A stretch of 59,710 nucleotides of DNA. It comes from Octopus bimaculoides (Eukaryota). The stretch spans positions 123,038,102 to 123,097,811 of the forward strand of contig NC_068984.1 in NCBI RefSeq assembly GCF_001194135.2, given 5' to 3'. This document shows positions 2-53,200 of the stretch, piece by piece. The translations under genes were made by a program, and so were the position numbers. The notes beneath the pieces are model-generated. The model saw nothing but the letters and a program-made list of their open reading frames with translations. It had not been told where the DNA came from and made no database searches. The first letter of the stretch is position 1. Every line of letters begins with the position of its first letter.

Positions 2-2870
2 GGTCAAGGTCACCAGCTACCTGTAGAGCCACTCACTCGTAAAGATATTCATGTTGTTGAGTCATCTATTGATCACGTTGATCAACAAGTCCCACTTCCT
101 ACTGCTCAAAATGTCAGACGATCTGTAGGTGGCGGTGTTTATCATGTTGACCAGCCTGTTGCTCTGGAAACTTTGCACCGTGTTGAGAAACCTTCTTTTC
201 AAAATGGAGAGTATCCTGTCAATCAATCAGTTGACAGCATTGAACCAGTTGATGCCAACATTTCTTATAGTCAACAAATTCCGTCTGATCAAGATTATAA
301 CATTGGAAATCTATCTACTCCAGATATTCAACATGTAGAAATGTCAAAAGGTGAAGATACTTTTGAATATCGTGATCTACCACAAACTGGTGAAGAGCTG
401 CCGGTTACTAAAGTTACCAAACCGACTGGTCCATTTGGTGTCTACCATGTTGATCTTCCTGTAGATCTAGAACAATTACGTCGTGTTGACCCACCTTCTC
501 GTCCAGTCAGCTCTCAAGATATTGACAAATCACTTACTCAAGCTGACATCCCATCAACTGAAGGCTTCTCGGAAGGTATTGAACACACTATTGGAGAATA
601 TCAAACCACACCTGTTGATGTTGTTCCAGGTCAAGGTCACCAGCTACCTGTAGAGCCACTCACTCGTAAAGATATTCATGTTGTTGAGTCATCTATTGAT
701 CACGTTGNNNNNNNNNNNNNNNNNNNNNNNNNNNNNNNNNNNNNNNNNNNNNNNNNNNNNNNNNNNNNNNNNNNNNNNNNNNNNNNNNNNNNNNNNNNNN
801 NNNNNNNNNNNNNNNNNNNNNNNNNNNNNNNNNNNNNNNNNNNNNNNNNNNNNNNNNNNNNNNNNNNNNNNNNNNNNNNNNNNNNNNNNNNNNNNNNNNN
901 NNNNNNNNNNNNNNNNNNNNNNNNNNNNNNNNNNNNNNNNNNNNNNNNNNNNNNNNNNNNNNNNNNNNNNNNNNNNNNNNNNNNNNNNNNNNNNNNNNNN
1001 NNNNNNNNNNNNNNNNCAACAAGTCCCTCTTCCTCATGCTCAAAATGTCAGACGATCTGTAGGTGGAGGTGTTTATCATGTTGACCAGCCTGTTGCTCTG
1101 GAAACTTTGCACCGTGTTGAGAAACCTTCCTTTCAAAATGGAGAGTATCCTGTCAATCAATCAGTTGATAGCATTGAACCAGTTGATGCCAACATTTCTT
1201 ATAGTCAACAAATTCCGTCTGATCAAGATTATAACATTGGAAATCTATCTGCTCCAGATATTCCACATGTAGAAATGACGAAAACTGGAGATGATGATGA
1301 ATATTATGATGTACCAACTGGTGAACAGCTGCCAGATACTAAAGTTACTAAACGTACTGGTCCATTTGGTGTCTACCATGTTGATCGTCCTGTTGATCTA
1401 GAACAATTACATCGTGTTGACCCACCTTCTCGTCCAGTCAGCTCTCAAGTTACTGACAGATCACTTACTCAAGCTGATATCCCAACTCCTCAAGATGTAC
1501 CAGAAGTTATTAAACACACTATTGGAGAATATCACACAACACCCTCTGGTCTCTCTGCTGGCCAAGACCATTTGCAAGATGATCATAAAATTAAACTGCC
1601 CATTGCTCATGATGTGCACAATGCTAAAATAGCCACTGATGATTCTGATGCTGTTCATATTCCTACTGACCAATATGGCCAGCATATTGCTCTGTCCACT
1701 GCTCAAGTTAATAAGGGTAATAGACTGTCCTTTGGTGCAGGTGTTTACCATGTGGATGTCCCAGTTGATCTTGAACGTCTGCACAGAGTTGACATGTCGG
1801 ATGGAAAGAGATGTCTGAGCTCAACTGATGAACCATCTACTCAGAATGTCCAAGAATCTAATAAAGATATCCAAAAAAGTATTGATCCATTTGGTCAAGT
1901 TTCATTCCCAGACGTTAATTTCGCTTTTGGTCAAGATCTCCAGCTGCCTGTGGAATCACTCACACGTAAAGATCTTCAAAGTGTTGAAATGTCAGTTGAC
2001 CAAGATCGCATTGATCCATCAAGGGATCGTAGTAATGTGCAAGCAGATCTACCCACTGGTCGAAATGTCAGACAATCTATTGATAGAGGTGTTTATCATG
2101 TTGACCAGCCTGTTATTCCAGGAACTTTGCGCTATGTTGACAGAGAGTATCCTGTTGGTCAGTCAGTTGATACTACTGGAACATATGATGTCAATCTTCC
2201 TCATGGTCAACAAATTCTACCTGATCAAGATTATAATATTGAAATACTCTCTCCTCAAGATATTCCACATATACAAATGTCCAAAACTAAAGATAATTTT
2301 CAGTATCATGATCTGCCAGCTAGTGAACAACTGCAAAGTATTGATGTTGCCAAACCTAGTGGTCCATTTGGTGTCTACCATGTTGATCTTCCTGTAGATC
2401 TAGAACAGCTACATCGTGCTGCCAAACCTTCTTCTCAAGGTGGCTCTCAGTCTGTTGATAAACCAGCAGGCAGTGCTGACATCACTACACGTCATGATAC
2501 CCCAGAAATTATTGGACAGTCTATTGGAGAATATCATACAACACCTGATCTTCCTGCTAGTCAAGGCCATTTGCCTTCTAAACAAGATTATCATATAATC
2601 AAACAGCCCATTGCTCAAGGTGTTCAATATACTAAAATATCCACTCAAGATACTGATGCCGTTCATATTCCTACTGACCAATATGGCCAGCATATTTCTC
2701 CATCTACTGCTCAAGATGATCAGGGTAATAGACTGTCCATTGGTGCAGGTGTTTATCATGTGGATGTTCCAGATAATCTTGAAAAGCTGCACAGAGTTGA
2801 CCAACATAGTCAGCAGAGACCTACAAGCGATACTGATCAACCTACTCATCAGGATGTACAAGGTAATATT
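2..2870 (+). repeat. Coding tandem repeat: 627-bp (209-aa) unit grading into a ~1-kb higher-order unit, with 8 GVYHVD motifs
   Basis: GGTCAAGGTCACCAGCTACCTGTAGAGCC recurs at 2 and 629 (627-bp period), and 1017-1560 matches 83-628. GVYHVD occurs near 131, 437, 1066, 1368, 1740, 2088, 2369 and 2748. Confidence 0.9.
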
Positions 2871-5800
2871 GGTTTACACACTGCTCAGGATGTTGAAAAC
2901 AATGTTGTAATACCTACTCCTGAAGGTGTTCATAGTGTGACTGCGGTTTCTACTCCAGGAATACAGCATATGTCATCTAAAATTGTAGATATGCAGTCTC
3001 CTGTCACATTCACTGACCTGAAATTTCCACTTGCTCAGGAACAGCATACTGGTGAAGGTATTCCAGTTCCCACAAGTCAAGATCAACTGCAAAAGACAGA
3101 TATTCACATTGGTGAAGGCCAAGAGCTGTCAACTATTGAGCAGCTCACAGATAAAAGTAGTTCCTGTGTTGATCCACATGGTTTTGGTTTACCATCCATT
3201 CAAGACAATACATACATTGGTGGGTTACCAGTTCATGCTGAGCTTCCTAGTAGCCAAAAGGATCATCGTGATGGTCTTTCAACTAATCAGCCTTCCTTCC
3301 ATAGTGACACCCCAACAGGTGGTTCACGTCTGCATCATGTTGACCTTTCCACAGGTCAAGATAGTTGCAAGCATACTGACTTATCTGTTGATCAAGATCC
3401 TTTAGTTGACAATTTTCCTGCCGATCAGTACTGCTTTTATGTTGACCCCCCTGTCTCTCAACAAATTCTCCTTGTACATCAAACTATTGGCCCAACCATG
3501 GACATACATGCACCTCTACACGGTTTTCATCTCCCCACTGGTCAAGATGTTCAACAACATATTCCTCTTCAGTCTCATCAAGTTGAATTACGTCATGATG
3601 ATTCTCGAACTGAAGATGGTAATCAAGATGCTAACAAAATTGTTGGAGTTCATTGTGATAAAGTATCTACTGGTGGTCAAATTCTAACCACAGTCCTGAC
3701 CTCTGACAGGGATGTTGGTCACCTTCGAGAGGAAGATCATCATGTTGATGGAAGTGTCAGTTCAGATGGGACTGTCCCAAGCATTCAGGCGCAAGTACAA
3801 AATCTTAACTTAACCTCATGCCAAGGACAGCTGAAAAAAGATGACCTATCCAGTGGGCAAGATCAGTTCAAGTCAGTTCAACATACTGGTCAACATAGAG
3901 ATGACCATGAACGTCAGTATGGCCTCAAACACAGTGACCAAGATGAAGACCATGAATGTCAGTATGGCCTCAAACATACTGACCAACATGGAGATGATCA
4001 TGAATGTCAGTATGGCCTCAAACATACTGACCAACATGGAGATGACCATGAATGTCGGTATGGCCTCAAACATACTGACCAACATGGAGATGACCATGAA
4101 TGTCAGTATGGCCTCAAACACAGTGACCAAGATGATGACCATGAATGTCAGTATGGCCTCAAACATACTGACCAACATGGAGATGACCATGAATGTCAGT
4201 ATGGCCTCAAACATACTGACCAACATGGAGATGACCATGAATGTCGGTATGGCCTCAAACATACTGACCAACATGGAGATGACCATGAATGTCGGTATGG
4301 TCTCAAACATACTGACCAACATGGAGATGACCATGAATGTCAGTATGGCCTCAAACATACTGANNNNNNNNNNNNNNNNNNNNNNNNNNNNNNNNNNNNN
4401 NNNNNNNNNNNNNNNNNNNNNNNNNNNNNNNNNNNNNNNNNNNATCAACATGGAGATGATCATGAATGTCGGTATGGCCTCAAACATACTGACCAACATG
4501 GAGATGACCATGAATGTCGGTATGGCCTCAAACATACTGACCAACATGAAGATGACCATGAATGTCGGTATGGTCTCAAACATACTGACCAACATGGAGA
4601 TGACCATGAATGTCAGTATGGCCTCAAACATACTGATCAACATGGAGATGATCATGAATGTCGGTATGGCCTCAAACATACTGATCAACATGGAGATGAT
4701 CATGAATGTCGGTATGGCCTCAAACATACTGACCAACATGGAGATGACCATGAATGTCGGTATGGCTTCAAACATACTGACCAACATGGAGATGACCATG
4801 AATGTCGGTATGGTTTCAAACATACTGACCAACATGGAGATGACCATGAATGTCAGTATGGCCTCAAACATACTGACCAAGATGATGACCATGAATGTCG
4901 GTATGGCCTCAAACATACTGACCAACATGGAGATGACAGTGAATGTCGGTACGGCCTCAAAGACAGTGAACAACGTCAAGATGACTTACAATGTCAATAT
5001 AGCATCAAATACATTGACCAACATGCAGATAACAAAGAATGCGAGTATAGCCCCAAACATACTGACCACGGTAATGTCTTTGAATGTCAGTATGCCCTCA
5101 AACATAGTGGTCAGTATAGGGATGATCAATACTGCTTTTATATTGACCCCCCTGTCTCTCAACAAATTCTCCGTGTACCTCAAACTATTGACCTAACCAT
5201 GGACATGCATGCACCTCTACACGGTTTTCATCTCCCCACTGGTCAAGACGTTCAACAACATATTCCTCTTCAGTCTCATCAAGTTGAATTACGTCATGCT
5301 GATTCTCGAACTGGTGAAAATGGTAATCAAGTTGGTGACAAAACTGTTGGGATTCATTGTGATAAAGTATCTACTGGTGGTCAGATTCTAACCACTGTTC
5401 TTACATCTGACAGTGATGTTGGTCACCTTCAAGAGGGAGATGGAATAGTCTCCGTCGTTCAGACACATGTACAAAAGAACCTCACCTCTGATGAAGCTCA
5501 ATTGCAAAAAGATGACCTTTCCACTGGACAAGGTCAGTTCAAGTTAGTTCAAGGTACTGAACAGCAAGGCACTGAATATAGCTTTGAACAAGGTCTTAAA
5601 CAGAGCAGCAGCACTGAATACAAGTACACTTTTGAACATACTGGCCAATCAGGTGAAAGTAGTAGCTATAATATTGAACAAATACACACCACAAAGGATT
5701 TTCCAAAATCTGATGAGCTCTCTGGTCATCAACAGAGTGATGTGTCCATTCTCCATCTTTCCACTCAACAACCTGATGCACTTTCTAGTAGTCACTCCCA

Positions 5801-6000
5801 AAGTAGCACTACTCAGCAAGGTGACATTTCATATTCAACTCACATATCATCTCAGTCAACTTCAGACCAAGATACTCTCCAATTCCAAGACTCTCGCACA
5901 CCAACCGTTCTATCTGACCCCACTAAAGAGGTCACAACAAAAAAGTCTTCACGGAAAAATCGTAAATCAAATCGTAAGAAGAAAAAATCATCTTCACAAG
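2..6000 (+). CDS. Giant exon A (5' end outside window): GVYHVD repeats, His/Asp/Cys 16-aa array, polybasic end
   Basis: Open frame from base 2 to the gap at 708-1016, continuing 1017-6000. The apparent frame change across the gap is a gap-size artefact, because the repeat unit shows the join. Donor is CAAG|GTAATT at 6000/6001, phase 1. Confidence 0.88.
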
Positions 6001-8258
6001 GTAATTTAGATGATCTCTGGTTTTTGCCTACCTCTCTCTTTCTCTCTCTCTTTTGCTCAGTCACTCTTTTTACATTCACTCACTTGTTCACATTCTTACA
6101 CTTTCGTCTCTTCTTAATATCTGCTGAAAGATATCTTCATCCTTGGCCTCAGCTTAATATAAAGGTTCTGGTATAAAAACAAAACAGATTTAAGCAAAAG
6201 CGCTCTAACTAACCATTTTCTTCAAAGTGTGTCTCAGAAATACAACTTCACTGTTGTGACTGAGGGAAAAAGAAAAAAACAGGCCTTTATCTTCACCAAA
6301 ACCAGGATTGTTGTTGTTGTTGGTCAACATTTGAGTGATGGCTTCTCTGATTGCACTTTGATGCCACTTCCTTGAGTTTTAACCATCATCCTCTAACTTC
6401 TGACAGGTTTCATTTCTGTGTAGAAACTGGTTTATTACATCTTATTTGGCTTGTTTTTATTACATATTTTTATTCATTTTTTCCCCTTTTTTGTTTTGTG
6501 CGAATTGGCACTCAAAGACAATTCAAAGATTTCATTTGCTTGACACTTTATCAGGTAAGCAATATTCATGACAACAACGATGATCCAGTAAAGTCTTTGA
6601 TTAACACATGCTTTAGAAATATTTCAACAAGTTCATCAATGCTGTATTGAGGCATCAACATTGGTTGACTTTACCATCTTTTCATGGCCATACAACTAAA
6701 TACTCATTGACCATGAAATCACCTTTTCAGTGACCATCTGTACATATGACTATAGTTTTGGTAGTCATATAACCATTTCTTTTCAGTGGCTATATAGCAG
6801 ATTGACAGTAGTTGTATAACCATCTATTCAGTGGTCACACATTTCATAGGTAACACTATAACCACCTCTGCAGTGGTCATGCTAATTATTTCTTTTGGCC
6901 ATGTAACCCTCTCATCAGAAGCCATCAAATCCTCCCTTCCATAGTCCTCTATCTGTCATCAATGACTATTATACAACTACTTCTTCGGTGGTTACATAGT
7001 TTCTCCTCTTGTGGTCATTTCTCCATCTTTTCATTGATCACACAGCTATCTATTTAGTGTCCACACAACTTCTATCTTTTGGTCATAAGCATTTTTTGTG
7101 ACATCCTTCATATTCCCTCTCAAGTACAGTGTGCATTAGAAGATATTTATAGCAACTTTGAAGATGTATTTGCCTCATTATGGTGCTGGTATTTATAAAA
7201 ATAACTGCTAAATACATCATTCATAACCTAATAATTTTTAGAGAAATGCATGCTTTCATAAAATTCTTAGATATACTTCCTTTTCTATATTTTGTACATA
7301 ATTTTTTTTTTTATGTTGCTATTATTTGTCATCATTATTATTTACTATTACTCTCAGCTTTTTTGTCTTTTATTTGCATTATTCAATTACTTTTAGCTTT
7401 CTTGACTAATACATTGATTGAAGTAAAATCTCTTCAAACTTTTGGTGGTGGTGTTTTTTGATTTGTTAAAAAAAAATGCCTTAGTGTTGTTATTCATTGT
7501 CCTTCGCATGCCATTTGTGTCTTCCTCATTACTATTATTATTTTCCGTAAGATCATTACCTCTTATGCTTCGTTATTTTCATTTGTAGCACACAAATACA
7601 TATAAAAACACTCACTTGCAAATGCATGCACACTCACTTTATATGCATACAACAACAAAATCTATAATCATTACCTGTAGATTTAATTTTTATTTATGTT
7701 TTGTTTGCTTTTTTAGTTTTGTTTTTTTAAACATTCCTACATTCGTTTTTATGTATGCAATTAAGGGTTGGACAGGTTAGTAAAGTAAAATTTTTCTATG
7801 GATTCTTGAATCAGATTCGAATGGACATACATTATGCGTGTATCTGTGTTTGTACTGCTATGTATATGTGTGCAAGTGTGAGCATCTGTGTGTATAGGAG
7901 TGTGTTTGATATATACATTAAAAATGGGGAAGGTTGGTTTATGGGATCACGTTAGGTTTCCCATCCATAAAGGGTTTAGCTTTATGGCATATCATCAGAT
8001 CCCGAAAACCTGTTGGCCCATGACCTCTTAAAAATAATTTTAAGAGGTCATGGGCCAACAGGTTTTTTGAGATTCTGATGATACACCTTAAAGCTAAACC
8101 CTTTATGGACAAGAAACCTAAGGTAATCCAATAAACCAGCCTTCCCCATTTTTAATATATACTGCTCTACATCTTAGTGAGCTTCTTCTTTTGGATTTAT
8201 GTTTTTTTTACAAACAACATATATATATATAATATTATATATATGATACCTACATATA

Positions 8259-8309
<51 letters not shown>

Positions 8310-10052
8310 AAAACAGGATATTTATAACATATGTANNNNNNNNNNGTATAAAACAGGATATTTATAACATATGTAATTACATATGTCAAGCATATATGAA
8401 CAACTTTACCGATCAATTTGTAATTACTCAAAATCCTCATCATCATCATTGTCATCACCATCATTATCATCTTCGACTTTGTGGCCAGCATGGCTAAATC
8501 AGTGGGACCAAATGTAATAAATGGACTACTTAATAGATATAGAATGAACGGTCGGCATTTGAAAAGTTGTATTTACATGGAGTACAGCAATAAATAGCTT
8601 ACCAATATAAACACTCATGCACATTCACTCTATTAACAAAACAAAGAACAAGAACCAGGGACTCTCAGTGATGCAGTTGTCTGAACCAAGGGTACTGTCA
8701 CAACACCCTAGTATCATAAGTAGCAACAAGTGGTCTCACATGATTTTCTTTTCCCATCAGTTTCATCAGTAGTTCATTATTGCATACGCACACACACATT
8801 GATTGGGTTTTATTCTACTAAAAACAAAAAAATATATATTTTAATTTACTTCATAATTTTGAAACATTAGCTTGACCAGTTTCTTGAGTTACTCAAGAGG
8901 ACACTCAAGTAAATACTCAACTATATATATAAAAGACTTTTGGGTATATTGAAATTAGATGTGAAACAATGGTTGGGAGGTAGGAGTGTATGATGATGAT
9001 GAAGAAAAGGTTAATAAGTACAGCCACAAATGTGTTGAATTATTGGCACGAGTGATTCCTCCAAAATAGAACTTTGGAAAGATCAATATGAGTCATATCA
9101 TCATCATTTCCATCATCATTTCCATCATCATTTTACATCTGCTTTCCATGCTGGTTTGGCTCAGATCATTCAACAGGATCTGATCGGTTGGAGGCCCACA
9201 TCTTGCTCCAGTGTCTTGCTTTGTCTTGAGCTCGATGGCTGGATGCCCTTCATGGATGGCTACACTTTAGAGAGTGTATCAGGAGCATATTTGTCGTGAC
9301 ACCAGCACAGTAGAGGTTCTCTTGCTCTCAGCAAGACTTGAGAGAATACTCTCAACTTTCACATATGTATTATAATTAATTCTTCATAAGGAGTAAACCA
9401 ATGAGATTGTTCAGTTTTTGAAAGAAAAGGTGTTAGAAAACCCACAGGTACAGATTAATTAATGATTTGTTATATGTGTAGCCATGCTTAAACAGAGAAG
9501 TCCATTAGCAAACTATGATGTACATAAATGTATGCATATTCTAATAACTGATATATACACACATATACAAAACAACTACTCAGAGAAATTGGCTATAATT
9601 TTCAGTCAAAAATTGTTTTCTTCTTTAATTCATTAACTTTTCAGCATGTTTTCATCTCAGCATCATGTTTCTGTTTCCATTACCTCCTATATTCATTTTG
9701 TTGCCATGGTTACCATCTCCCCCATCTCTGTTGTTTAACTTGATTTGATTTGCATGTTTATATAATTATTTTGATTGTTTTTGCCATTGTTGTTAATGTT
9801 GTTTAACCCCAGGTCAGATCTTATCCAGCAAACTTATAATCAAAGACATTACAGCCGTGACCATCACATCTTCTATTCAGGCATAGTGTATCAAGGAATA
9901 CATTATCCAATATGTCCTTCCATTTTTTTTAAGATGGTAGGATGTGATTTAAGGGAGATTTCGTTATTATATCTAATAGATGGAGTAACTACATATAGGG
10001 TTCTTCGTTGTTTCATAGTTCACCTTGTTGTCATAGTTGTTGATGTTGTTAT

Positions 10053-10083
<31 letters not shown>

Positions 10084-12644
10084 AATGTTATTTTTTTATG
10101 AATATTAATGGTTTTTTTGTGTGTTTTTTTTTTCTGAATTTGTTAAACTTGCTAATTACTACTGTTAGTGTAATCAGCTGCAAATTTGTCCTTATTTATG
10201 CTTTATTTATTGATCCTTTTGTTACTGTTGAAATACATTGCTTTTTTTTTTTATTAATTTCTAAAAGAATGCAAAAAATATTAAATTAACTTTGTTCTTA
10301 TTAACATGGTGTTTGAAGCATAACATGAAATTTTACTGGAAGATTTTCATTTAGATTACTTTAAAAAGGGAAATTTGTATGAGACAACCAGGGGTCATTT
10401 CAGGTGGGTTCTCATCAGAAGAGCTAATACCTAATTTTGATTTTCTCTCATACACATACACACACATGCATATGTATACAACCAGGCTTCCACACAGTTT
10501 CCATATACTAAAATCATTTCAAGGCATTGGTCAACCAGGATCTATTGTAGAACACACTTGCCCTTGGTGCCATACATTGGGACTGAATCTGAAACCATAC
10601 AGTTATGACCTGAAGGAAGAACAGAGAATGATAGGGAGATGGAAAGAATAGATAATAAAGTGTAACATGGCTGAAATAGATGGACGGACGGACGGATGGA
10701 TGGAGATAAATGTAGCTTTGTGTTATCAGATAGACACACACACAGAGATATATAGGTAGGCAGATTGAACTGTAAAGTTTAAATCTTGCTTCAAGAAGCA
10801 GCAAAAACAGACCCAGAGAAAGTTACTTGATCTGGAAGAAATAACTGCAAAATATCTCTGTAATTACATAGTGTGTGAAAACAACTGAGGTAAAGTACCT
10901 AATTAATAAAGAAATTATGAATGAAATGGGGGGAAAATTTTTATATTAAAAATATAGAGAAATTAGTAAATTGTAAACATGATGTGTTATAATAGTGTAG
11001 AGTGGGGTTTGTAATGACTGAAGCAAAGATATATATATATATATATATATAGATATGTGTGTATTTCTGGCATGCACAGATAGTAGATACAGACAGATAT
11101 ACAGAGACATATAGACAGATATACACAATCATACATTTGGAAAGTTAGATGCACAGATATATACAAAAATACATATAGATGGGTTAATTGAAAAGATTTT
11201 GTATTTGGAAGCTGTGAAAACAAAGTCAGAGTGAATGATCTGATCTGTTAAAAATAGCAGTAAAATATACCTTGAATTGAATATAACATAAAAAAGAAAG
11301 AGAGAAGTGTATCTGGTTGATTGGGAACATATTAATGAAATGGTATGAAATTTGGCAAAACTGATTATTTTTTTTTTTTAAATGATGAATAGTATGGTAA
11401 TAATACCCTAGATATGCTACCAATTTCCACATAAAGTGTAGGTGTGTAGTTTGACTGCTCATGTCTATGTCACCATTTTTTAAATAGTGGAATCGTTTGT
11501 CATGCCCACAAAATCCTTAACCTTGAATATTGAAAATATTTCTTTAATTTCTTCTTTTTATTTTTTCTTTGACATCTCTCACCTACCCTCTTCATAATCA
11601 CTCACCCTGTATCTATCTACCTAAGACTCTATTACAAAACCACAACTTTGTAATTTAGATTTAAATTTCTTATATTATATACAGGAGGTGTACATTATTT
11701 CATTCCTCCTATTTTATATTGCCAGATACTTTGAACTATATCTTTCCTAGCTTAATATTCTATATTTTACAAACCTGAAAAATTTTCACTTTATAATTTC
11801 ACCTTAATTACTTCATTTGACAGAATTTATCTCCCCTGTATAAGGGAAGCTATCACTAGAAATATTCCTGAATTTATCTCCCTTGTTAGCCTTTGCGTGC
11901 CTAGTAACATATGCAAATACATGTAGTTCAATGTACACTATTTCGAAAATACACACTGGTGAAACTGAACAGTAATGGATGAGTAACTAACCAACCATAC
12001 TGTTTAATTACATGCACAAATGTACTCTCCAACACTAAGGAATTTTCTGTGTATTATGCATATATACACACACACAACTGCATGTAACAAAAAATACAGG
12101 AAGAATATGTTTGAAAATAGATTAGTTAGATTAGGGTATGTGTGTGTGTGTGTATATATAAACAGTTGACAGCATGCTCTGAGTTTTTTCCTTTTTTCGT
12201 TCATGGTTGTACAGTAGAGTAAGGTGTTTGCCATGTTTATAAGATTCCTTAACAAATTTATCAATTAAACTCTCAATACATCCCAATACAGTCTTCAGAC
12301 AGTAGAAGTGTGTTTAACTACACACATGCTAACACTGAGTTTTTACATAGACCTTATAATTCATACTAGGATCCTTGTTGTCATTTAACACCCTGTCTAC
12401 CTTACGTTATAAGTATAGTAAATCCCTTTCTTTACTCATGAACAGCCAAGGTTGAAACTCTGAGTTAAACAAGAGCAGAATACATGGTAGGGCAAAGTAC
12501 TTAATACATAGCTGCAAATGGAATGTATTTATCTAATAAAATAACTCTTACAAAACTTGTCTTGTTTCTTTGCCTATGGAATATCTCAAAAAGTCTTGAG
12601 TCTAGTATCAAATGAAACAAGATTTATATATCACTGTGTCAAGT

Positions 12645-12722
<78 letters not shown>

Positions 12723-19212: not shown

Positions 19213-19634
19213 TTTAACTCTCCAATTCATCTCAGAGCCAAACTAAATATTCATTATGCATTTATACTTCTACTGGTTACTGTCATTCAACTACAGCCAT
19301 GATAGTGCCTCTGTCTTCAGGGGTTTTAGTCAATTATACTGACCCCAGTACTTCAATCTGGTACTTTTGTTATCGATCTCTATTTGTTGAATTTAGTTTT
19401 TGTTTAGTTTTTTTTTTTCACACAAAAGGATACAACCCAATGCCCATATTTATACCAATTAACACGGATACATATATGCACACACATACACACACTGGCT
19501 TTAGCACAGTTCGTGCCTACCAAATTCTAATCACATTGCTTTGAACAACCTAAGTCTATAAGACTTGTCACTAGCCCAAGGTGCTGCACAGTAGGATCAA
19601 AGTTGGAGCCATACACATATAAACACAAATATAC

Positions 19635-19689
<55 letters not shown>

Positions 19690-19930
19690 TATATATATAT
19701 ATACATAGAGAGAGAGAGAGAGAGAGAGAGAGGTTATGAGAGCCAGAGGTTTCAGGTAATGCTGAGTAAGTGCAATGGATAAACCATACTTAGGCTCCAA
19801 GTTTGGTGATTATGCAAATAAGGGGTCTAACGTAGGTCATATATCAGCGTGTGAATATAAGGATTTAATTTTCGTAATGAGATAAAAATATACACAGCCT
19901 TGGATTTTTATCTCATTATGAAAAGTAAAT

Positions 19931-20003
<73 letters not shown>

Positions 20004-23000
20004 CACATACAGACACTAATTCTATATTGTTCATGGTACTGTTTTCTGAAGGAAAATAGAAAATTCATCAGCATGTTAATAACCAACGATGATTTTAGAA
20101 CACTTTGTGATTTTTTTTTTTGTGTTTGGTTTTTTTATTCCACCCTTACTGTTGCTAATATCCCAAAGTGCATGAATGCAGTAATGCAAGATTTTCTTGA
20201 TTTACAATTATCCTGCTCCACTGAAGAACTGAAGCTAGTTCAAGACTTTCATCATCCTCATTTGATATAATTTTATTTTCCCATTTAAACATCCCAGTGT
20301 CTGCTGTTTTGTTTTTTTGTTTGTTTGTTTTGTTTTTTTTTAATGGTTGTTGTCAATACCCTTACAACATTTTCCTTTTCACCTTTATATATCTTAGTTA
20401 ATCCAGTAAATCCCTGCTGCCATCAGTTATTCTTATTTATCCATCATATCTGCACTGTGTATGTTTTCTCGTTTATTTCTTCAATATTTTGTTTATTTAT
20501 ATATATATTAATGTTTTTATTTGTTTCTCATTTTATTTTGATTTCTTCCAATTAAGGCTGTCTTATTCCCAGTCTGCACTGTGAAGCTTGTTTTTACTGC
20601 TATACATGTGATATAAAGTATTGCATATATTTTATAAATATATATATGTATGTATATATACATATACATGTGTATATGTATGTATATATATACATATACA
20701 AATATATATATATATATATATATATAAACTTGATAATCTTGTGTTATCGTGATATTCTTGTATGTTTATTATTAAATGTTTAGAGTATTCTGGAATGATA
20801 TACCCATAAAAAAAAGAGTGATCTTCATTTGTTTTGTTTACCAAAATAGTTTCTTTGAGGCCTGAAGATCTGATCCTTTTTCAATACCTATAACTTAAAT
20901 TCTTAAATTACTTTCTATTTACATTGACTCCTTCAAAATTCCTATTTACTAATTTTTACATTAGTAAATACTTTAAACCATAAGTTGGCATCAACTAAGT
21001 AATTTATACATCATATTCTTTTAGAAATTCCTAATTTTTACTGTTTCACTTGAAAGATTTTTGGTATATCCAGGGTTCTCATTGCATTAATGGTAATTAA
21101 TAATTCTGATCAGAACATTTCATCATTAACCAGGTTAAAATGAACTTTTAATTAACTCTGATTTTTTTTTTCCCCCATTATTTAATCTTCTTAACTCTTT
21201 ATTAATTATAATCCAGCATTTGCAATTTAAATTTATATACATATACTCTCACACATTGTTACACACAGATACAGAAAAACATACACAAATACATATAAAT
21301 GTATGCATAAAATATGTATCTCTGTGTGTATGGTTTTTTTTTTTTTTGTAATGTTCCATTTTCTCGATAATTCCTTTACAATAACTAATGTGTATTATTT
21401 AAAGTAAAAGTCTGTAAACCTTTTCCTTCTAATAACATTTCCAATTTACTCATCTTGAAATCTCTCCTTTTTAATGCTTGCATTTCGGATTGCTGTCGGA
21501 TTTTTTTTTTTTTTTTACCTACCTTTAATTATAAAACAAACAAAAACAAAACTATTGACAAAAAAAAAAAAAACCCTTGATAGATGATGAGAGTGAGGGT
21601 AAAACAAGATCAGTCGCTTCTATTATTCAAATGTTTGAGCAAACATCTGACACTGCTTTGCAAAGTTCGGCTACAGACATTGTTCGTGAAGTCCAGAAAT
21701 CAGCACAGGCAACGTTACGCAAAGAATCTAAAGAATTCACAAAGCAAGACTCTTCTGAGTGGGTTGTTATTGACAACAGCGATCTTGATGGCTTTGATGC
21801 AGAAAAGTTGCCATCAGCCAATGGTACTTATGTTGAAACAGAAGATTCTGCTCCAAAGGTAGAAGAATGGGTAAAAGTCTCTGCTGTCAAAGAGAAATTT
21901 GAAGACAAAATTAAGAATGGCTCCATGTCTGAAAAAACTATTATACGTGAAGCTACCAAAGTTCATACAAGTACTTTAGCAAAACATAAAGCTTCAGAGA
22001 AAGCTGATGATATTGATCAACCTTACGGTGTCCCAGAACCGCCCGACGCCCACTTTAAGACTCCTTCAGATGATGAAAATCTTGATTTTTCTGAGAAATT
22101 GAAAATGTTTACTGGTAAACATGCCCAAAATTATTATGTCACAACTCAAGCTGATGAGTTATTAAGCTCCGATGAAGAAACACCAGACACTACCTCTAAA
22201 GGAAGTGAAAGGTCATACCAAACTGCATCTGAAACGAGTGAAATCCGATCTGAAACTGTAAAAGTGTCTTCTGCAGGAGAGCAAAAAAGTGAAGTCATTG
22301 AAGAACGACGCGAAAGCACTTCATCACTGATTGCTAAGTTTGAAGAAGTTACAAATCGTGAAAAGTCATTAAAGAAAGAGGATAGCAAAGAGACAGTACA
22401 AAAAGAAGTGACAAAATCTTGGAAAACTGATTCTTCTCAAAGTGCAGTCCAGGAGGAAAAGGAAAGTCACGTATTCCAAGAGAAAAAAGAAAGCATTTCT
22501 TCAGAAAGCGAAACTCCTGATTTGAAGGAAGTTCACAAAGATAGTAAAGAAACTGTATCATCAGTTGAGAAGAGCTTCAAGACTGAAACAACAGAAATGA
22601 AACAGAAAGTAGAATATTCTGTAGATGATGGCAAAGTAAAAGAGATCTTCACTTCTGAAGATAGCCAAATTTTATCATCTAAGACTTTGGACAAAACCAT
22701 ATCCTCACTCGATAAAGATATCTCACCAGAACTTAAGGATAAATCACCTTCACCAGAACCTCAGCTGAAATCACATTTACCTGAGGCTAAGGAGAAAACT
22801 CCCTCACCAGAGCCCCAACTTAAGTCTCCTTCACCAAAACCTAAAGAGAAATCTCCTTCACCAGAACCTAAGGAGAAATCTCCTTCACCACAACCTAAAG
22901 ATAAATCTCCTTCACCAAAACCTAAAGATAAATCTCCTTCACCTCTTCAGCTAAAGTCAAAGTCTCCCTCACCAGAACCTAAAGAAAAGACCCCATCACC

Positions 23001-26000
23001 ACCTCACGTGAAATCAAAGTCTCCCTCACCACCTCACCTAAAGTCAAAGTCTCCCTCACCAGAACCTAAAGATAAGTCTCCCTCACCATCTCACCTAAAG
23101 TCAAAGTCCCCTTCACCAGAACTTAAAGATAAGTCTCCTTCACCAAAGTTACAACTTAAGTCTTCTTCACCAAAACCTAAAGATAAGACTCCCTCTCCAC
23201 CTCACCTCAAGTCAAAGTCCCCCTCACCACCTCACCTAAAGTCAAAATCTCCCTCGCCCGAACCTAAAGATAAGTCTCCCTCACCACTTCAGTTAAAGTC
23301 AAAATCTCCCTCACCAGAAATCAAAGACAAGTCTCCTTCACCACTCCACCTTAAGTCAAAGAGTCCTTCACCAGATCTGAAAGAGAAGACTCCCTCTCCA
23401 CCTCACCTCAAGTCAAAGTCCCCTTCACCATCTCACCTAAAGTCAAAATCTCCCTCGCCCGAACCTAAAGATAAGTCTCCCTCACCACTTCAGTTAAAAT
23501 CAAAATCTCCCTCGCCTGAACCTAAAGATAAGTCTCCCTCACCACTTCGGTTAAAGTCAAAGTCTCCCTCACCAGAACCTAAAGACAAGTCTCTTTCACC
23601 ACTCCACCTTAAGTCAAAGAGTCCTTCACCAGAACTTAAAGAGAAGACTCCATCACCACTTCGCCTAAAGTCAAAATCTCCCTCACCAGAACCTAAATCA
23701 AAGACTCCCTCACCACTTCAAAAGTCAAAGTCTCCTTCACCGGACCCTAAAGATAAGGCCCCTTCACCACTTCACCTGAAGTCAAAGAGTCCGTCACCAG
23801 AACTTAAAGGGAAGACTCCATCACCACCCCACCTAAAGTCAAAGTCTCCCTCACCAGACCTTAAAGATAAGTCTCCCTCCCCACTTCACCTAAAGTCAAA
23901 GCTTCCCTCACCACCTCACCTGAAGTCAAAGTCTCCCTCACCAGAATCTAAAGGGAAGACTCCCTCACCAGAGCCTAAAGAGAAAACTCCATCACCACCA
24001 CACATAAAGTCAAAGTCCCCATCACCAGAACCTAAAGCTAAGTCCCCCTCTCCACCACGTCTGAAATCAAAGTCTCCCTCACCAGAACCTAAAGAGAAGA
24101 TTCTCTCACCAGAACCTCAACTCAAGTCTCCTTCACCAGAACCACAGCTGAAAGCACCTTCCCCAGAGCCTCAGGCCTCTGAAATTTGTCCTAAGCCCTA
24201 TGATGAAGAAGATTTTGAAATTATTGAGCAGGAGGAAATTTTGGAAGCCAAGATTTCCTTAGAGCGCCAGACACCGTTCGAACCAGCTGCTATTGATCTT
24301 TCATCAACTGACAAGGTTTGTCCTCCAAAAGAACACGGAGCTGAGCCACCAGATGATGGCCTTCAGACACAACTAGAAGAAGAACCTCACAAAGATACTG
24401 ATTATGAAATCTCAAGGAGAGAAGTTTTTTTAGAAAAGGAATCTCGCAGTTTCTATACATCGAAACCCGAGCCATCTAAAGACATAATCTCAAGCAAATT
24501 AGTTGACAAGGATGTGCACACCATTGTCTCCACAACCTCTATCAAGGAAGTGTCAACAACCATCTCTGAACACACAACCAAAGTAATTGAAGATGAAGAT
24601 AAGGAAAGCACAACTATATCTAGTGAGGAAGATTTTCTTTCAAAAAACGAGATGCGATCTCCTGTATGTGATGACATACAGGAGAGTAAAGTAGTAGAAA
24701 GTGTACCTGCTGACAGTGTTAAGGTTTCACCTGTGGAGCAGAAAATTACTAGAAAATCATCGTCTGGTGAACTGTTTGAGATCTCTCGACAGGAAGAAAA
24801 AATGATTATAGACTCTCCAGAGAAACTAGAAATTCATGACTGGCAGACTTCAGCACCAGAAGCTACTGAACGATTTGACAGACAGGCTGAATCTATGTCT
24901 GATGAGAGTTTAGTAGAGGTTCAGCTGGATGCTTTAAAGGAAGATATTAGAGAAAAAGTGCTTGAAGAAACCCAAGAAAGATCTGTCAGAAGATTACAAC
25001 AATTACAGGATGTTTCAGATGAGGAATCAGATGAAATATTTACTCACACTGATCAAAGAACAAAAGAGGAATTCACTGAGAGGTCATATGAAGACTCCAA
25101 GAAAAAGGCATCCTCAACAGAGTCCCCGGGATTATCACCAACAGCAGACCATCTTAAAAAAGATCTGGGTGACCGAACAGAGATAACTTATGAATTCCCT
25201 GTACAAGAAGACTTATCATCAGATGAAGGATCCAAAGGTAGTTCTCTAGATTTGTTCCTGACACATGAAAAGAGCTGTCAGGAGGAAGAAGAACACTATA
25301 CCTCACACAAAGATCAACCCTCCGTTACTCATGAACGACAGGTTTCCACAGTAACATCAGAATATAAAACATCAAGTACATCTGAAATGATAGAAGAAAG
25401 TGTCAGCAAAGAAGAGAAATCTGTGTATCCAAGTAAAATTTCCCAAGAATACCGTGTGGAAGATGAGCAGGATATGACATCTGATGAGGAAACATCTGAA
25501 GAAATCCATGAAACTGATACCTCAAAGAAAACAGCACCTCAGTTTAGTTCCATTCTGTCAGAGGAAGCTACTTATTTTGAAATCAGCAGGCGAGAGCAGT
25601 TCATGACTGTTGGCTCACCTGAAAAAATTGAATTTAAAACACCGGCCAAAAGCGATGGTCTTAGTTTTAGTGCCGATCCTTTTTTAGTATCTAGTGCCTT
25701 GGCACATGAAACATCGGTGGAGAATATTAGAAGCATTCCCAAAGCGGAATCTCCCCTTACTGAGCAATCTCCAAAACATGTAGCCAAGGATGACACTTCT
25801 GACCGAACTGAGGAGAAATATTCTGTTGATCTTGCTGCTTTACAAGCAGAGGCAGATGCTAAGTTTAAAGAAACTTCGCCTCATGACTTCCAAGAAGAGA
25901 AATATCTGTCCAGTGATGATGAGAGCGATGTTGATGATCATGATGATGTTGACATAATGACAGAAATGGATTATATGTCTAAATCTCAGAGTATAGATGT

Positions 26001-47200: not shown

Positions 47201-50200
47201 CGAGCACAAGTCTCTTTGTCAGAGAGTCAAAGTAAAATGATAACTGAAACTAAGGTCTATCAAGCAAAAGAACCCAGTGAAGAAATTCAACTTACCGGAC
47301 ATGATGCCACAGAGAAAACAGCTAGACTTCTTACAACCACGGCTAGTGAGCCCATTATTTCTCATCCATTCGATCAGTCTACAGTGGAAACTATATCTCC
47401 AGAGGCCAGTAGTTCTGACAGTGAAGGTTTCTATGACAAAGAATCTGGCAAGAAGTTACCTTGGGAAACTGTCCACCATTTCTCCCGACAGTTCTCTGAT
47501 AATTATCTTGAACAGCAAGAAAAACAAGGAATAGTTACTGTGCAGTCAGTTGACATGGGAGTATTTTACCGGAGAAGTAGCAAAGACTATTCAAACGTAA
47601 CATTTAGTGAACAAGATATCTCTGAGTCTATTGCTGAAGAAGAAGAAGAACCCCCAAAACGGGTTACCTTCACGCTTTCGGAAGATTTGGAAGAGTTTCC
47701 ATCAGAAGTAGTTACAGGTTCGGATGAGTCAAAACATGATGATGAAGTTGAACAAGAAATTAGGAAACCAGATGATATCTTTGATGAGTCCGTCAAAGAT
47801 CAAATTGTAGTCAAGACAGTAAAAAAACAACCTACTGCACTATCCAAAGTAGATGCTGTTGTTATCACAACATCTAAGACAGAAGAACCTATTGTCACAA
47901 CATCCAAGATGGAAGAACCTGTTGTCACAACATCCAGGACAGAAGAACCAGTTGTCACAACATCAGAAGAACCTGTCGTCACAACATCCAAGACAGAAGA
48001 ACCCATTGTCACAACATCTAAAACAGAAAAGTCTGTCTTCTCAAAATTCAAGACAGAAGAACATGTTACATCTTCTAAAGGCGAGGAACCTGTCATCACT
48101 ACAGTGAAGACAGAACACATAACTACAACATACAAAACTGGAGAACCTATCATCACAACTTCCAAGAAAGAAGAGTCTGTCATCAAAACCTCTAAAACAG
48201 AAGAACCTGTCATCACAACATCAAGGACAGAAGACATTACTATAGCATCCGAGGCTGAAGAACCTGCCATTGTAACCTCCAAGACAGAAGAACATGTTAC
48301 AACATCAACAACTGAAGAACCTGTCATTACAACATCTAAAACTGAAGAATATGTTACATCTACAACTGAAGAACCTGTCATTACAACATCTAAAACTGAA
48401 GAATACGTTACATCTACAACTGAAGAACCTGTCATTACAACATCTAAAACTGAAGAATACGTTACAACATCTAAGACTGAAGAACCTGTCATTGTAACCT
48501 CCAAGACTGAAGAACGTGTTATAACATCTACAACCAAAGAACCTGTTGTCACAACATTCAAGACAGAAGAACATGTTAAAACATCCAAAACTGAAGAATG
48601 TGTCATCACAACATCTAAGGCAGAGGAACCTGTCAGTACAACAACAGAGACAGAAGAACATGTTACTACAGAATCTGAAAGTGAAGAACCTGTTGTCACA
48701 ACAACCAGGACAGAACGTATCATCAGAACATCTAAAATTGGAGAGCCTGTCATCACAACATCAAAAACAGAACATGTTACGACAACATCTAAAACTGGTG
48801 AACCTGATGTTACAACAACCAAAACAGAAGAATTTGTCACTACAACATCAGAACCTGGAGAACCTGTCATCACAACCTCTGAAACTGGTGAACCTGTCAT
48901 CACAACATCCAAGACAGAAGAACGTGTCATCACAACATCCAAGAGAGAAGAACCTGTCATCAGAACATCTAAGACAGAACATTTCACTGTGGATTCAAAA
49001 GAAAAATTTGACATACCAACTGCCAAAACAGACCATGTTACTACAACAACTAAGTCAGCACATGTCACTGTAACTTCCACTGTAGAACATGTCGTCAAAA
49101 CGTCCAAGAAAAAAGGTGATATTGAAGAAGCTGAGGAACATGTCACCATAACATCTAGGGAAAAACATGTTCCAGAGGAACCTAAAGCTGAGGAAGAGTC
49201 TGCAGTGGAAGCCAAGAAAGATATCCTTGAACCATATGACAGGATGTCTGGAGAATATGAAGCTACTGTTTTGGCTAATATAATGGATGACCATTCTTCA
49301 AAACAAGAAAAAACATCTGAATCACCTGAAGAATTATCTAGAGAAGACACTTTAAAAGAGAAAGATCTTGAGTATGAAATGGTCTCTAAGAGTGCTACTG
49401 ACTTGGCTAGTCCTAGTGAAAGTAAGTCTTCAGACCTTTCATTAGATCTTTCATCAGAAAAACTTCCATCAAAAGATAATCTTGATGAAGAACAACAACA
49501 ACAACTTCGACCAAAACCAGACAGTGAAGAAGTATCACCAAAATCAGGAATAATCGGTGTTGTAAGTATTGAATCTCGGATGGCCCAAAAAGAATTATTA
49601 CAGGAGTCAGCAGACGAGAAGGATCGCTCCCTTTCACCATCAGTTGACAGTGATGAATTATCAACCACTTATGAAAGCCAGGCAGAACTACAGGAAGAAC
49701 TCTGGTCTGAAATCCCCCCTGTTGATCGCTATCCTGGCCCTGCCAGAAGGAAGCATTATGCTGATGGTGAATCCTCAGAAACTGAGAAAGAATCTCCTGA
49801 AATTGAACTTTCTCCTATTGCTGAAGCACCAGCCTCTAAAACTGACTCCGAGGAGCAAGAAGAGAGTAAGATGACAGCGCAAGATAGAAGGGTAACATTT
49901 CTATCAGAAGAGAGTAAGGAGAAGCTGAGGCAATCTATTTCTAATGAAGATTTAGTTAAAACATCGACCTCTTCCTCTGAAGTATCCAACGAACCAACTT
50001 TATTAGCTGCTTCATATGATTTGGATTCAGGGCATGTTTCACACATTGTGACAGCTTATGACATGTCTCCAGACACCATTGAGAGTCAGGTGCCACATCC
50101 ACCGGCACCTAAGGCTATTCTTTCGAGTCCTGAAGATGACGTGTTTGAAGTTGAACCTACTGTGGGAACTTCTCGCATCGACGAGCCTTGCACTGAGCCA

Positions 50201-53200
50201 GATTCTGAGAAGAGTTATACCGGGCCTCAGTCTGAGGTCATCATTATAGAAGACATTTGCGTCAGCAAAGACAAAACGGGGTCGGAGTCGACGGAATCTT
50301 TACCGCCAACTCCTGCACCGACGCCGAAAGATGCAACCACCATCAAAGATACCGTTTGTAATCTTCAAGACGCAGCCAACAAGCTGCAGACCGAAGGTCT
50401 CTTTGATCGGCAGTTTGGATCTGTAAGCAGTGAAACTTCTGAAAAACGTCCTTCAAGTTTTGAAAAGGACCTTTCAAAAGACGAAAGCAGTGATGATGAT
50501 GATGATCATGGCCAATCATTTGAAATGGTTTCACCAACTGAAATTATTGGCTATGATCAGTATGCTGCTAAATATTTACAAGGTGGTATAGCGGGATGCA
50601 TTGAAACAGCAAGTTTGACCGCTTCAGTGGAATCCCTCTCTACATCCGGAAGTAGTTTTGCTGACCTCAGAGCTAGTGAGCCCACAAGTATGAAGTCTAG
50701 TTTAGAAGAGTTTGCAAGTGCTACAGCTTTTGTTGAACCATCAGCACCTCCAATGGAAGAAGTATGTAAGATCCCCAGTTCTCACACCATGAAACCTGAT
50801 ACCGATTCCTCACCAGATCAGTCGCTTTTCAGCAGTAGCGATGCTTCAGAGAAAGGGGCAGCCACTATGGATATTGTTGCCTCCAGTGTTGCATCCCCAG
50901 GTGCATGCCGTCCTGATTTGTTGCCCTCTGACTCTTTTCAAAAGAGTTTGTCTACAGAGGAGATCAGTGAAACTGAAAATATCGAAGACATTGCTGCCGA
51001 CAGAATCTCCCAATTACCAAATGGTCCTACAGAGGTAGATTTTCAACCAGACATTGACTCTGTGTCATCTACTGTTAAAACTGTGGTGCCTGCAGCACCA
51101 CCAGATTTGGTTCAGTCATCACCCTCATATGTTATGGAAGAAGAAAAATCACAGCAGGAAGATGTTGCCATAGAACTAGAAGACAATCAAATATCGGCTG
51201 GTTCTGATGCTGCTGTCAGAGATGTCATGACCGATAGCTTGATAGAAGATGTGAAGTTGTCGGCTGAGCAACAGGAAGTCTTGGTAACGTCAGATCAGAC
51301 TTTATATGAACTTGAAATGCCAATGGAGGAAGAAGCTTCCCCTATTGAACAAGTTGGTCCAACATCAGCTACTGTTTCCATAACTGAAACCACGTCATCT
51401 GTGGTGGTTAAAACAGAAGCCCCTACACCAATGGAATTTCATGAAGAACAACAGTGTGAGGTATATCCAGCTGAAATGGTAGAGTCTGGATCTCCAACTG
51501 AAATTATTGGACTGGAACCAGTGTTAGATGACCTTGAAGAACAGCCATATGAGTTGAAGAAAGATGAAATTTATCCTGGTAAAAGAGCACTTGAGTTTGA
51601 TGTGTCTAGCTATGAAACTTTGTTAGAAGAAAGCAAAGAAAGACAGCAAGAAGGAGAGACTAGTGCGGTAGAGGTTAGCCATCTAATTAGAGAAGATCAG
51701 AGGATTAATCTGGATGATACTGATGAAGAAACAGTTCAGTTTTCGGATCAGCTAAAATCCGATCATGATGCAAGTTTTGTTCATACTTCAGAAAAAGTGT
51801 GTACAGACATGGTAGAAGAAGAATTTAGTGATTTAAGTAAAGATGCTTCTTATGAGCAAGTTGAACTGGCTGAAAGTAGTCTAGAATTTGCTGAGAAAGC
51901 TGAAGAAGAACTTGAAGCATTAGCAGGAAAAACCCCAGAAATATCATTTGAACCAACTAAAGGGGAACAAGATTTGGACAGACCCATATCCCCAACACCC
52001 CAGGATTCTCAAGAAGGTGTCCTCAGTGATGATTATGAGAAGGTTAGTGCTAGTATTAGCACAGAAGAACTAGAGAAAACAGCTACAGTGTTTGTAGACT
52101 CTGTTCTTGAAGAAGCCTCCAAAGTTCAGGAGAAAGTCCAGGAATTCCCTGAACAAACAGAAGCTGAAAAGCCAATCGATGAAACAACTCTTGATGATAG
52201 CAAGGACTCTGAAAAAATGCTTGCTTTCTCATTTTCTGAACAATTTGACCCATCAATGATGTGTCGGTCACAACCAGCTTTTTTCTCGGCGCCACCTCCA
52301 CCTTCCCATCCTCCTCCTTTCACAAAACAGGGGGATGATGATATGCCCGAGATCACCATCACAGAACACCTACACAAGAGTGTTGACAAAGATGACTATC
52401 CAGCTGGCTTTGTTCCATCACATATGCCAGACTCTTCCTCTGAGCAGGAAGACAAAGATGATGAAAAAGAATCTGGAGATGATAGTCCAAAGGGTGAAGG
52501 AATGTCCTATTTTGAAATGATTCAAGATGAAATGGAATTCGAATCAGAAGAGACCGAAAAGAACGGAGTGTCATCTCATGAAACTAGTTCTTCGGCATTC
52601 ATTATCGCTGATGCTCATTCCGGTTCAGCAAAAACATTCACCAGTGAACAAGAACTTGAATGGAATGTGCAGAAATTTTCTGAAACTCCTGACAAAGTAC
52701 CAACCACTTCTTCGTTTGAAGACTCCTTTTCTCTACAAACTAAAACTGAGCCAGTTCCTATCAGTTCTTCAAAACAATTCCAAAGAGATTCTGAAACTAA
52801 AGATTCTTCTAAGAATGGTTTCCTTGGATTTGAGCCTTCGGTCATGCACGCCGCTGACATTCTGAGCCCCGAAGATATTGCTGATACATCAAGTGTGGAC
52901 AGCTTTACAACAGTCGTTGGTGTAGACCAAGAAGGGGACGAGTGTGACGATGACCGTTTGGCTGATGTGGCGTCTATGACCTCATCAATCCATTCCGACA
53001 TTTATTCAATGCACACTGAACCAGAAGAAGAAGAACCATATGACTGGCCATTATTGACAGAAGAGGACAAATCAGGGGAATCTTCTCCATGTAGCGATCG
53101 TTTTGAGATGATTGGGAAGACTGCTTTATCGGTGATATCTGAAAAGTCTGATGAAGATCGATTTGAAATGATAGAAAAAGATGAACTGGAAGCACTCTCT

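Follow-up and report, generated by a model that had tools for sequence, protein, structure and literature searches.

The 59,710-nucleotide (nt) stretch of the Octopus bimaculoides genome considered here (RefSeq assembly GCF_001194135.2, contig NC_068984.1, positions 123,038,102 to 123,097,811 of the forward strand) is referred to below as the window, and all positions are counted from its first letter. It carries exons of an uncharacterized gene, LOC106881226, one of which is a giant exon containing a 48-nt unit repeated head to tail in at least 24 in-frame copies. This array is a His-rich, acidic coding tandem repeat, already contained in public gene models yet undescribed; its anatomy, reading frame, youth, origin, and lack of relatives are documented in what follows.

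Host gene and coding status of the array

The RefSeq models of LOC106881226 are 7487–7707 amino acids (aa) long and are named either “titin-like” or “uncharacterized”, the former name probably reflecting composition. When 1.84 billion representative proteins were searched exhaustively, a single true match emerged, the 7658-aa XP_014787059.1 (“titin-like isoform X6”, with 18 sibling isoforms), whose sequence includes the array together with the other exons of the window; no mention of the locus was found in the literature. The product of the gene is a giant (about 7,600 residues), domain-less, mollusc-specific protein, which is probably intracellular and largely disordered. In the window's large exons and at both termini of the 7658-aa model, nothing exceeded the Pfam threshold, ANK, ZU5/UPA/death, spectrin, CH, plakin, and Ig/FN3 domains included. 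No signal peptide was found in either N-terminal variant, and the Rfam search across the whole window returned nothing. A first-pass annotation, made from the bare sequence, had spoken of a “cytoskeletal adaptor exon”; this label is unsupported, as no Pfam domain was found and the profile of the C-terminal region has no relative in the PDB. The RefSeq name “titin-like” is the sole hint in that direction.

The exon holding the array is read in the frame with codon starts at 1017+3k, open over 654–6173; an equivalent frame is open between position 2 and the first assembly gap. The exon ends at a CAAG/GTAAT donor (6001, phase 1) fitting the phase-1 acceptor of the next giant exon. Two further giant open exons lie at about 21.6–28.4 kb and about 46.2–55.4 kb, and all three have plausible phase-1 splice sites at both ends (6000/6001, ~21590, ~28353, ~46182, and ~55360), by which they can be joined in frame. 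With phase 1 at both ends of each, any one of these exons could be skipped without loss of the frame.

The other plus-strand frames are open only inside the array, and the coding frame alone runs on for kilobases on both sides. An antisense gene (minus-strand open reading frame at 3876–4985) was considered and rejected, since that frame is also open only inside the array, as expected of a stop-free repeat. The array is present in 15/15 of the RefSeq isoforms examined. Judging by the open frame, the splice phases, and the RefSeq models, it appears to be coding and to be included in the mature mRNA.

Anatomy of the array

The consensus unit, CRYGLKHTDQHGDDHE, comprises three His, one Cys, three Asp, and one Glu, with the ligands spaced as H-x3-H-x3-H-E-C. 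Parsed in the frame of the surrounding exon, the array extends from 3879 to 5135; Tandem Repeats Finder delimits it at 3880–5106 and resolves a left block (3880–4363; 48-nt period, 10.2 copies, 92% matches) and a right block (4446–5106; 48-nt period, 13.9 copies, 87% matches), with scores of 821–1225. The 46-nt consensus, taken with up to three mismatches, has 16 occurrences, every one of them within the array, against zero expected from 100 shuffles.

In the in-frame parse, 19 full near-consensus units are accompanied by a leading proto-unit, two stubs at the 80-N assembly gap, and four degenerate 3′ units (Table 1). The first unit to the left of the gap is the 15-aa RQYGLKHSDQDEDHE, with eight more full units following before the 8-aa stub. 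Three units of the array measure 45 nt (15 aa, two His) and the remainder 48 nt. In every structural respect tested, the array fits a coding minisatellite: its period (48/45 nt) lies within the roughly 10–100 nt of such units and is a multiple of three, it is in frame on both sides, and a homogeneous core is bordered by diverged edges, namely the first unit and the four 3′ units.

The 391 sequenced residues encoded by positions 3879–5135 include 63 His, 24 Cys, 71 Asp, 27 Glu, 25 Lys, 16 Arg, and 27 Tyr. Hence, His makes up 16% of the array vs. 5.6% of the rest of the exon, and Cys 6% vs. 0.6%, with Asp and Glu together accounting for 25% of the array. These figures agree with the first-pass annotation as regards the unit, the fixed spacing of its ligands, and the expected yield (over 60 His and about 20 Cys in about 400 aa); its estimate of 21 or more units was also a fair one.

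Table 1. Features of the giant exon and of the array in LOC106881226 (positions in the window)
Feature	Position	Strand	Basis
Giant coding exon of LOC106881226 holding the array; assembly gaps at 708–1016 and 4364–4443	2–6000	+	Open frame, splice donor, identity to XP_014787059.1
Module A, upstream copy of the ~150-aa duplicated module (DQYCFYVDPPVSQQIL ... GQDQFKSVQ)	3423–3881	+	Alignment to module B
Leading partial proto-unit HTGQHRDDHE, passing from the module A tail into the array; like the second half of the unit, HTDQHGDDHE	3882–3911	+	Translation
Left block of the array: 9 full units (two of 45 nt) and the 8-aa stub CQYGLKHT, then GA	3912–4363	+	Repeat finding and in-frame parse
Assembly gap within the array, 80 N	4364–4443		Sequence and phase test
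Right block of the array: 7-aa stub QHGDDHE and 10 near-consensus units (one of 45 nt)	4444–4943	+	Repeat finding and in-frame parse
Four degenerate 3′ units: CRYGLKDSEQRQDDLQ, CQYSIKYIDQHADNKE, CEYSPKHTDHGNVFE, CQYALKHSGQYRDDQY(C)	4944–5135	+	In-frame parse
Module B, downstream copy (DQYCFYIDPPVSQQIL ... GQGQFKLVQ)	5124–5552	+	Alignment to module A
Module B tail with unexpanded proto-units GTEQQGTEYSFEQGLKQSSS / TEYKYTFEHTGQSGESSS / YNIEQIHTTKDF	5553–5702	+	Local alignment to the module A tail and first units
Array-encoded peptides HTDQHGDDHECR and HTDQHGDDHECQYGLK, candidates for proteomic detection			

Assembly gap, copy number, and isoform lengths

The bases bordering the gap inside the array (the last before it and the first after it) both occupy repeat phase 25 and codon position 2. 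As written, the gap keeps both flanks in one frame (80 = 2 mod 3). At the same time, a gap made of whole missing units would need a length of 47 mod 48, and 80 does not suit this register; hence, the gap length is a mere estimate and the copy number of the array is uncertain. The RefSeq models reproduce the genome except for 81 nt (the gap and one more base), so that the two stubs are fused into one unit, with no splice signals at the junction. By dropping these 81 nt, the models assume that no units are missing from the gap.

Another discrepancy concerns the isoforms themselves. According to the alignment over the array region (window 4058–4869), 6/15 of the RefSeq isoforms examined are devoid of 1, 4, 4, 5, ~6, or 9 whole units, so the models carry 24, 23, 20, 20, 19, 18, or 15 units, and all 15 keep at least 15. 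Every genomic deletion reproducing each of the shorter models was enumerated, and no GT/GC-AG intron able to make the unit deletions was found among them. The AT...AC ends of certain deletions are explained by the ATAC within the unit, whose ATACTGAC is not similar to the U12 donor consensus. Splicing as the source of the unit-deleted isoforms was rejected on these grounds; given the lack of GT/GC-AG ends in any enumerated deletion, the isoforms look like transcript–genome length differences rather than splice products. Such differences could stem from allelic copy-number variation or from repeat collapse in transcript assemblies. The length polymorphism anticipated by the first-pass annotation is therefore plausible, given isoforms short by one to nine units, but repeat collapse would be a possible source of the same picture. 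Overall, the array is probably variable in length, and both the bridging of the gap and the unit-deleted models are probably annotation consequences of a gapped repeat. The locus can serve as a warning in this regard, since neither the bridged gap nor the whole-unit “isoforms” are probably products of splicing.

These irregularities also raise the question of whether the array is partly an artifact, either with the order or number of its units distorted by short-read collapse or a mis-join, or with the array lying outside the mature mRNA. The in-array gap of a length out of repeat register, the loss of 81 nt without splice signals in the models crossing it, and whole-unit isoform differences beyond the reach of any canonical intron are what such an artifact would leave behind. 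However, many units with distinct variants occur independently on each flank of the gap, the 5.5-kb open frame runs through both sides with fitting splice phases, and at least 15 units are retained in all 15 isoforms examined, which makes an artifact very unlikely. With units on both flanks, a continuous frame, and retention in the isoforms, it is the exact length of the array that is in doubt and not its existence.

Age and origin of the array

The 16 full 48-nt units share a mean pairwise nucleotide identity of 96%, whereas the other coding arrays of LOC106881226 show only 66–76% matches. Having the most homogeneous units, the His array is the youngest of the three coding arrays of the gene. 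The first-pass annotation, which described the units as nearly identical at the DNA level and the array as young or homogenized, is borne out as regards both the identity and the youth. Eight sites vary among the 16 full units (three synonymous and five non-synonymous), a number insufficient for a test of selection.

The other two arrays are of quite different composition. One of them, KSPSPEPK/KSPSPLHLKS (window 22723–24143; 27/57/114-nt periods, 66–76% matches), is reminiscent of the KSP phospho-repeats of neurofilament or MAP1B. The other is TSKTEEPVITTS (TSKTEEPV; window 47860–48979; 30/57-nt periods, 67–73% matches).

The His array is flanked by direct repeats, modules A and B, with a nucleotide identity of 95% over the first 63 codons and 88% over the next 41 codons, and an omega of about 0.6 (8 synonymous and 16 non-synonymous differences). 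Aligning with the start of the array and homologous to its seed, the module B tail preserves unexpanded proto-units (…TEYSFEQGLKQSSS TEYKYTFEHTGQSGESSS…), which have no Cys and two His. The degenerate 3′ units keep Cys1, Tyr3, and Lys6 in 4/4 cases and His at 4/12 positions, 8/12 being lost. Since the proto-unit lacks Cys and the edge units lose His, the His3-Cys pattern is to be regarded as a property of one amplified variant rather than as a long-maintained one. Within the locus, i.e., judging by the edge units and the proto-units, the ligand positions do not seem to have been conserved over time. The first-pass annotation had named free loss of His and Cys positions in orthologous arrays as an argument against metal binding; within this locus, such loss is partly seen, as the edge units retain Cys in all cases but lose most of their His.

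Collectively, these observations point to an origin of the array by tandem amplification, through unequal exchange or replication slippage, of one proto-unit of 15–16 residues in the tail of the recently duplicated ~150-aa module. The His/Asp/Cys-rich composition is that of the variant which happened to amplify and not an old conserved trait. The array is expected to encode a flexible stretch of 390 residues or more, with more than 20 evenly spaced H-x3-H-x3-H-E-C clusters.

Search for relatives

The array has no detectable relative in the databases searched. Beyond the model of the locus itself, none was found among the 1.84 billion representative proteins; 54 other matches of that search have far lower scores and are nearly all limited to the array part of the query. 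Those inspected are either unrelated period-16 arrays, belonging to fishes, a pearl oyster, and a green alga (e.g., YGQPHADPNAATHADP in Mesostigma and TSHHSIDTHCLSLLIV in Pinctada), or other low-complexity proteins; they were rejected as homologs on the basis of their alignments and names, and a “hornerin-like” fish protein belongs to the purely compositional matches. Word-indexed protein searches, in which the queries were the entire exon and the array together with its flank, gave no matches either, though their index evidently lacks the locus's own RefSeq protein. A degenerate DNA pattern back-translated from the unit had 0 matches in metagenome contigs, and a PDB sequence search gave no match up to an E of 10. 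No homology to HRC, HRG, or any other named family emerged from the Pfam, PDB, and representative protein searches.

Classical metal-binding modules were also considered and rejected. A zinc finger or knuckle would be recognized by CCHH, CCHC, or CCCC within about 30 residues, and a metallothionein by at least 15% Cys with C-x-C or C-C. In the array, Cys occurs once every 16 residues (6%); C-x-C, C-C, and C-x2-C are absent, and there is no Pfam match.

Predicted structure and disorder

The AlphaFold2 single-sequence model of 10 units is all-beta, with a mean predicted local distance difference test score (pLDDT) of 82.7, a predicted template modeling score (pTM) of 0.73, and strands of period 16, in which 11-residue strands (DHECRYGLKHT) alternate with DQHGD turns. 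On paper, the strand is amphipathic, with H, C, Y, L, and H on one face and D, E, R, G, K, and T on the other. Taken at face value, this model would imply folding or assembly of the units into a regular beta structure, whose His/Tyr ladders might cross-link or polymerize with metal or at low pH.

The control argues otherwise. The same 480 nt shifted by one base (window 4467–4947), encoding a meaningless peptide, yield an all-beta model with still higher scores (pLDDT 89.1, pTM 0.80). Structural neighbors of the in-frame model in the PDB are lacking at any significant level (best E 0.23, template modeling score at most 0.40), and the very low hydropathy of the unit also speaks against a folded array. 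Confident yet unrealistic beta models of perfect repeats are a documented artifact of AlphaFold2, obtained for 32/78 random repeat sequences (PMC11795689). In view of the control, the published artifact, and the lack of a PDB neighbor, the prediction carries no weight; the beta model was rejected as evidence, and the array does not qualify as a beta-solenoid or beta-meander; a genuine beta structure of the array appears highly improbable, the least credible of the readings considered here. The case provides a warning for structure prediction: AlphaFold2 builds a confident beta model even for the wrong frame, so that a natural sequence reproduces the published perfect-repeat artifact.

In the charge–hydropathy plot, the unit falls deep in the disordered region (mean hydropathy 0.278 vs. 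the Uversky boundary of 0.443), and its composition suggests that the array is disordered. By calculation, each unit has a net charge of about −1.8 to −2.8 at pH 7.4, which approaches zero near pH 6.

Comparison with known systems

Coding minisatellites, or variable number tandem repeats (VNTRs), are known from the VNTR exons of mucins, from filaggrin/hornerin, and from involucrin, i.e., from large disordered or structural proteins. The octopus array shares with them the head-to-tail units of a multiple-of-three length within one large exon, the high identity of units, the diverged edges, and the apparent variation in copy number. It differs in the sequence and composition of the unit, which is unrelated to those of mucin, filaggrin/hornerin, or involucrin, and its apparent copy-number variation is that among the gene models.

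Metal binding and pH sensing can also be achieved by composition and not by fold. The Helicobacter proteins Hpn and Hpn-like and the His-rich region of histidine-rich glycoprotein (HRG) bind Ni/Zn and sense pH in this way. The high density of His and, in the case of Hpn, the presence of Cys recall the octopus array as a chemical analogy only; they come from bacteria or plasma, contain short His runs or pentapeptide repeats, and lack an acidic unit with a 16-residue period.

A further comparison is offered by the secreted His-rich repeat proteins of molluscs and annelids, including mussel foot protein-4 (mfp-4), the His-rich proteins of squid beak, suckerins, and the Nereis jaw protein; in several of them, assembly is driven by His–metal coordination or His titration. 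Their likeness to the array lies in His-rich tandem repeats and in the mollusc or annelid source. At the same time, they are secreted, modest in size, and mostly basic or Gly/Ala-rich, whereas the octopus array is acidic, has one Cys per unit, and sits in a protein of about 7,600 aa without a signal peptide; no sequence relationship was found. The secreted His-rich proteins of cephalopods are reviewed in PMC11931252.

In function, the closest analog is HRC, a protein of the sarcoplasmic reticulum in which nine near-identical 29-residue repeats, each uniting HRHRGH with 10–11 acidic residues, mediate low-affinity, high-capacity Ca binding (PMC6171002). Like the array, HRC (>30% acidic residues, 13% His) is built of nearly identical tandem repeats joining a His cluster with an acidic run. 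The differences are that HRC has a signal peptide and is luminal, that its repeats have no Cys (its Cys lie in a separate C-terminal Cys-x-x-Cys cluster), and that its sequence does not resemble the octopus unit.

Charged spacer or metal-binding segment

Taken as a whole, the evidence makes it reasonably probable, although by no means secure, that the array is a young coding minisatellite giving rise to a flexible, charged (polyanionic) spacer, in which chelation is a by-product. Its role would be mainly that of a charged spacer in a repeat-tolerant protein. The segment may well bind Zn, Ni, or Cu (and weakly Ca) in vitro and lose charge on acidification; such binding would be a by-product of composition rather than a selected function. 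The by-product explanation is favored for the reason that the array is young, its seed is devoid of the ligands, His is lost at its edges, the number of units varies, and the gene tolerates unrelated arrays.

The opposite view is that the array is a selected multivalent segment which binds or buffers metals (Zn, Cu, Ni, and maybe Ca with low affinity) or senses pH, comparable to HRC or HRG, with one site per H-x3-H-x3-H-E-C cluster and more than 20 sites acting together. According to established chemistry, Zn, Ni, and Cu, and weakly Ca, are bound by any peptide in which 11 residues include three His, one Cys, and four carboxylates. On these grounds, metal binding of the array in vitro is likely; metal binding as its function is unproven. 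The share of His, Cys, and acidic residues at fixed spacing, the roughly tenfold enrichment of Cys over the rest of the exon, and the retention of Cys in every degenerate unit speak in favor of selection. So do the lack of a signal peptide in either N-terminal variant, implying that the thiols would stay reduced in the cytosol, and the switch of net charge between pH 7.4 and pH 6; besides, HRC sets a precedent for His-rich acidic repeats as high-capacity cation binders (PMC6171002). Against this stand the loss of most His in the edge units and the Cys-free proto-units with two His, the very young age of the array and its lack of a detectable relative, and the other unrelated arrays of the gene, which indicate that expansions of any composition are tolerated. 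The number of units apparently is not fixed either, ranging from 15 to 24 across the predicted isoforms. On balance, a selected metal- or pH-responsive function is unlikely, though it deserves more credence than the other alternatives.

The preferred explanation, that of a charged spacer with incidental chelation, has several observations to contend with. Three His and one Cys, regularly spaced beside acidic residues, have the look of a designed chelator. Among the units, non-synonymous and synonymous variant sites stand in a ratio of about 0.4, and Cys, Tyr, and Lys are retained even in degenerate units; this hints at some constraint on the peptide. The AlphaFold2 model is all-beta, although the control shows this result to be uninformative, and the disorder of the array is read from composition only. 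Likewise, the inclusion in the mRNA is taken from the RefSeq models, and the conservation of the array or of its His and Cys is judged within one locus.

In its boldest form, the functional view would make the array a lineage-specific invention, i.e., a cytosolic string of at least 20 His3-Cys/Asp sites in a giant octopus scaffold, which would buffer Zn/Cu or undergo compaction, cross-linking, or phase separation upon a rise in metal or a fall in pH, its copy number being tuned by unequal exchange. This scenario is quite unlikely.

The array findings bear on no long-standing open question. Should it be no more than a young expansion, the array represents a clean case of a giant, repeat-tolerant, disordered protein gaining an extreme composition in one step. 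If the metal- or pH-related function were true, cephalopods would offer a cytosolic polyvalent chelator of an unusual kind in this array, whose 16-residue motif would be ready-made for metal-responsive materials.

Other features of the gene

The first ~700 nt of the window (2–707) represent an open-frame copy of a further module, marked by a motif with a GVYHVD core. Most gene models skip this part and enter the exon near 1040, probably owing to the 309-N gap at 708–1016. The 19-residue motif xGVYHVDxPVxLExLHRVx is found upstream of the array in eight well-kept copies (window 131–2801, starting at 131, 434, 1065, 1365, 1737, 2085, 2367, and 2745) within larger repeated modules, and two variants of it, CFY[VI]DPPVSQQIL, lie at 3432 and 5133. 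It looks like a repeated short linear motif, for which no relatives were found.

Only the C-terminal region of the LOC106881226 product has relatives. The part encoded at 53051–55144 is kept in uncharacterized gastropod proteins (Pomacea LOC112575051, Candidula, and Lymnaea) at 31–44% identity. Its best homolog lies on an unannotated mollusc-like contig of a metagenome assembly, too short to hold any N-terminal exon. The region belongs to no Pfam family and has no PDB relative in the profile search. It contains four SSLxEFExLE motifs, about eight DSL motifs, and one WGPYxExKKVYTMxEWEAMK box; a literature search for EFERLE matched only surnames. The F-x-x-L core following acidic/Ser residues presumably resembles an LC3-interacting motif.

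The gene model also includes, in its N-terminal part lying upstream of the window, a short perfect array of about four to five DDESTRVT repeats (residues ~175–212). The introns in the window are rich in (AT)n, (TA/CA)n, and CAT-rich microsatellites (8219–8310, 9099–9133, 10057–10083, 12600–12722, and 19600–20000), and several assembly gaps adjoin them.

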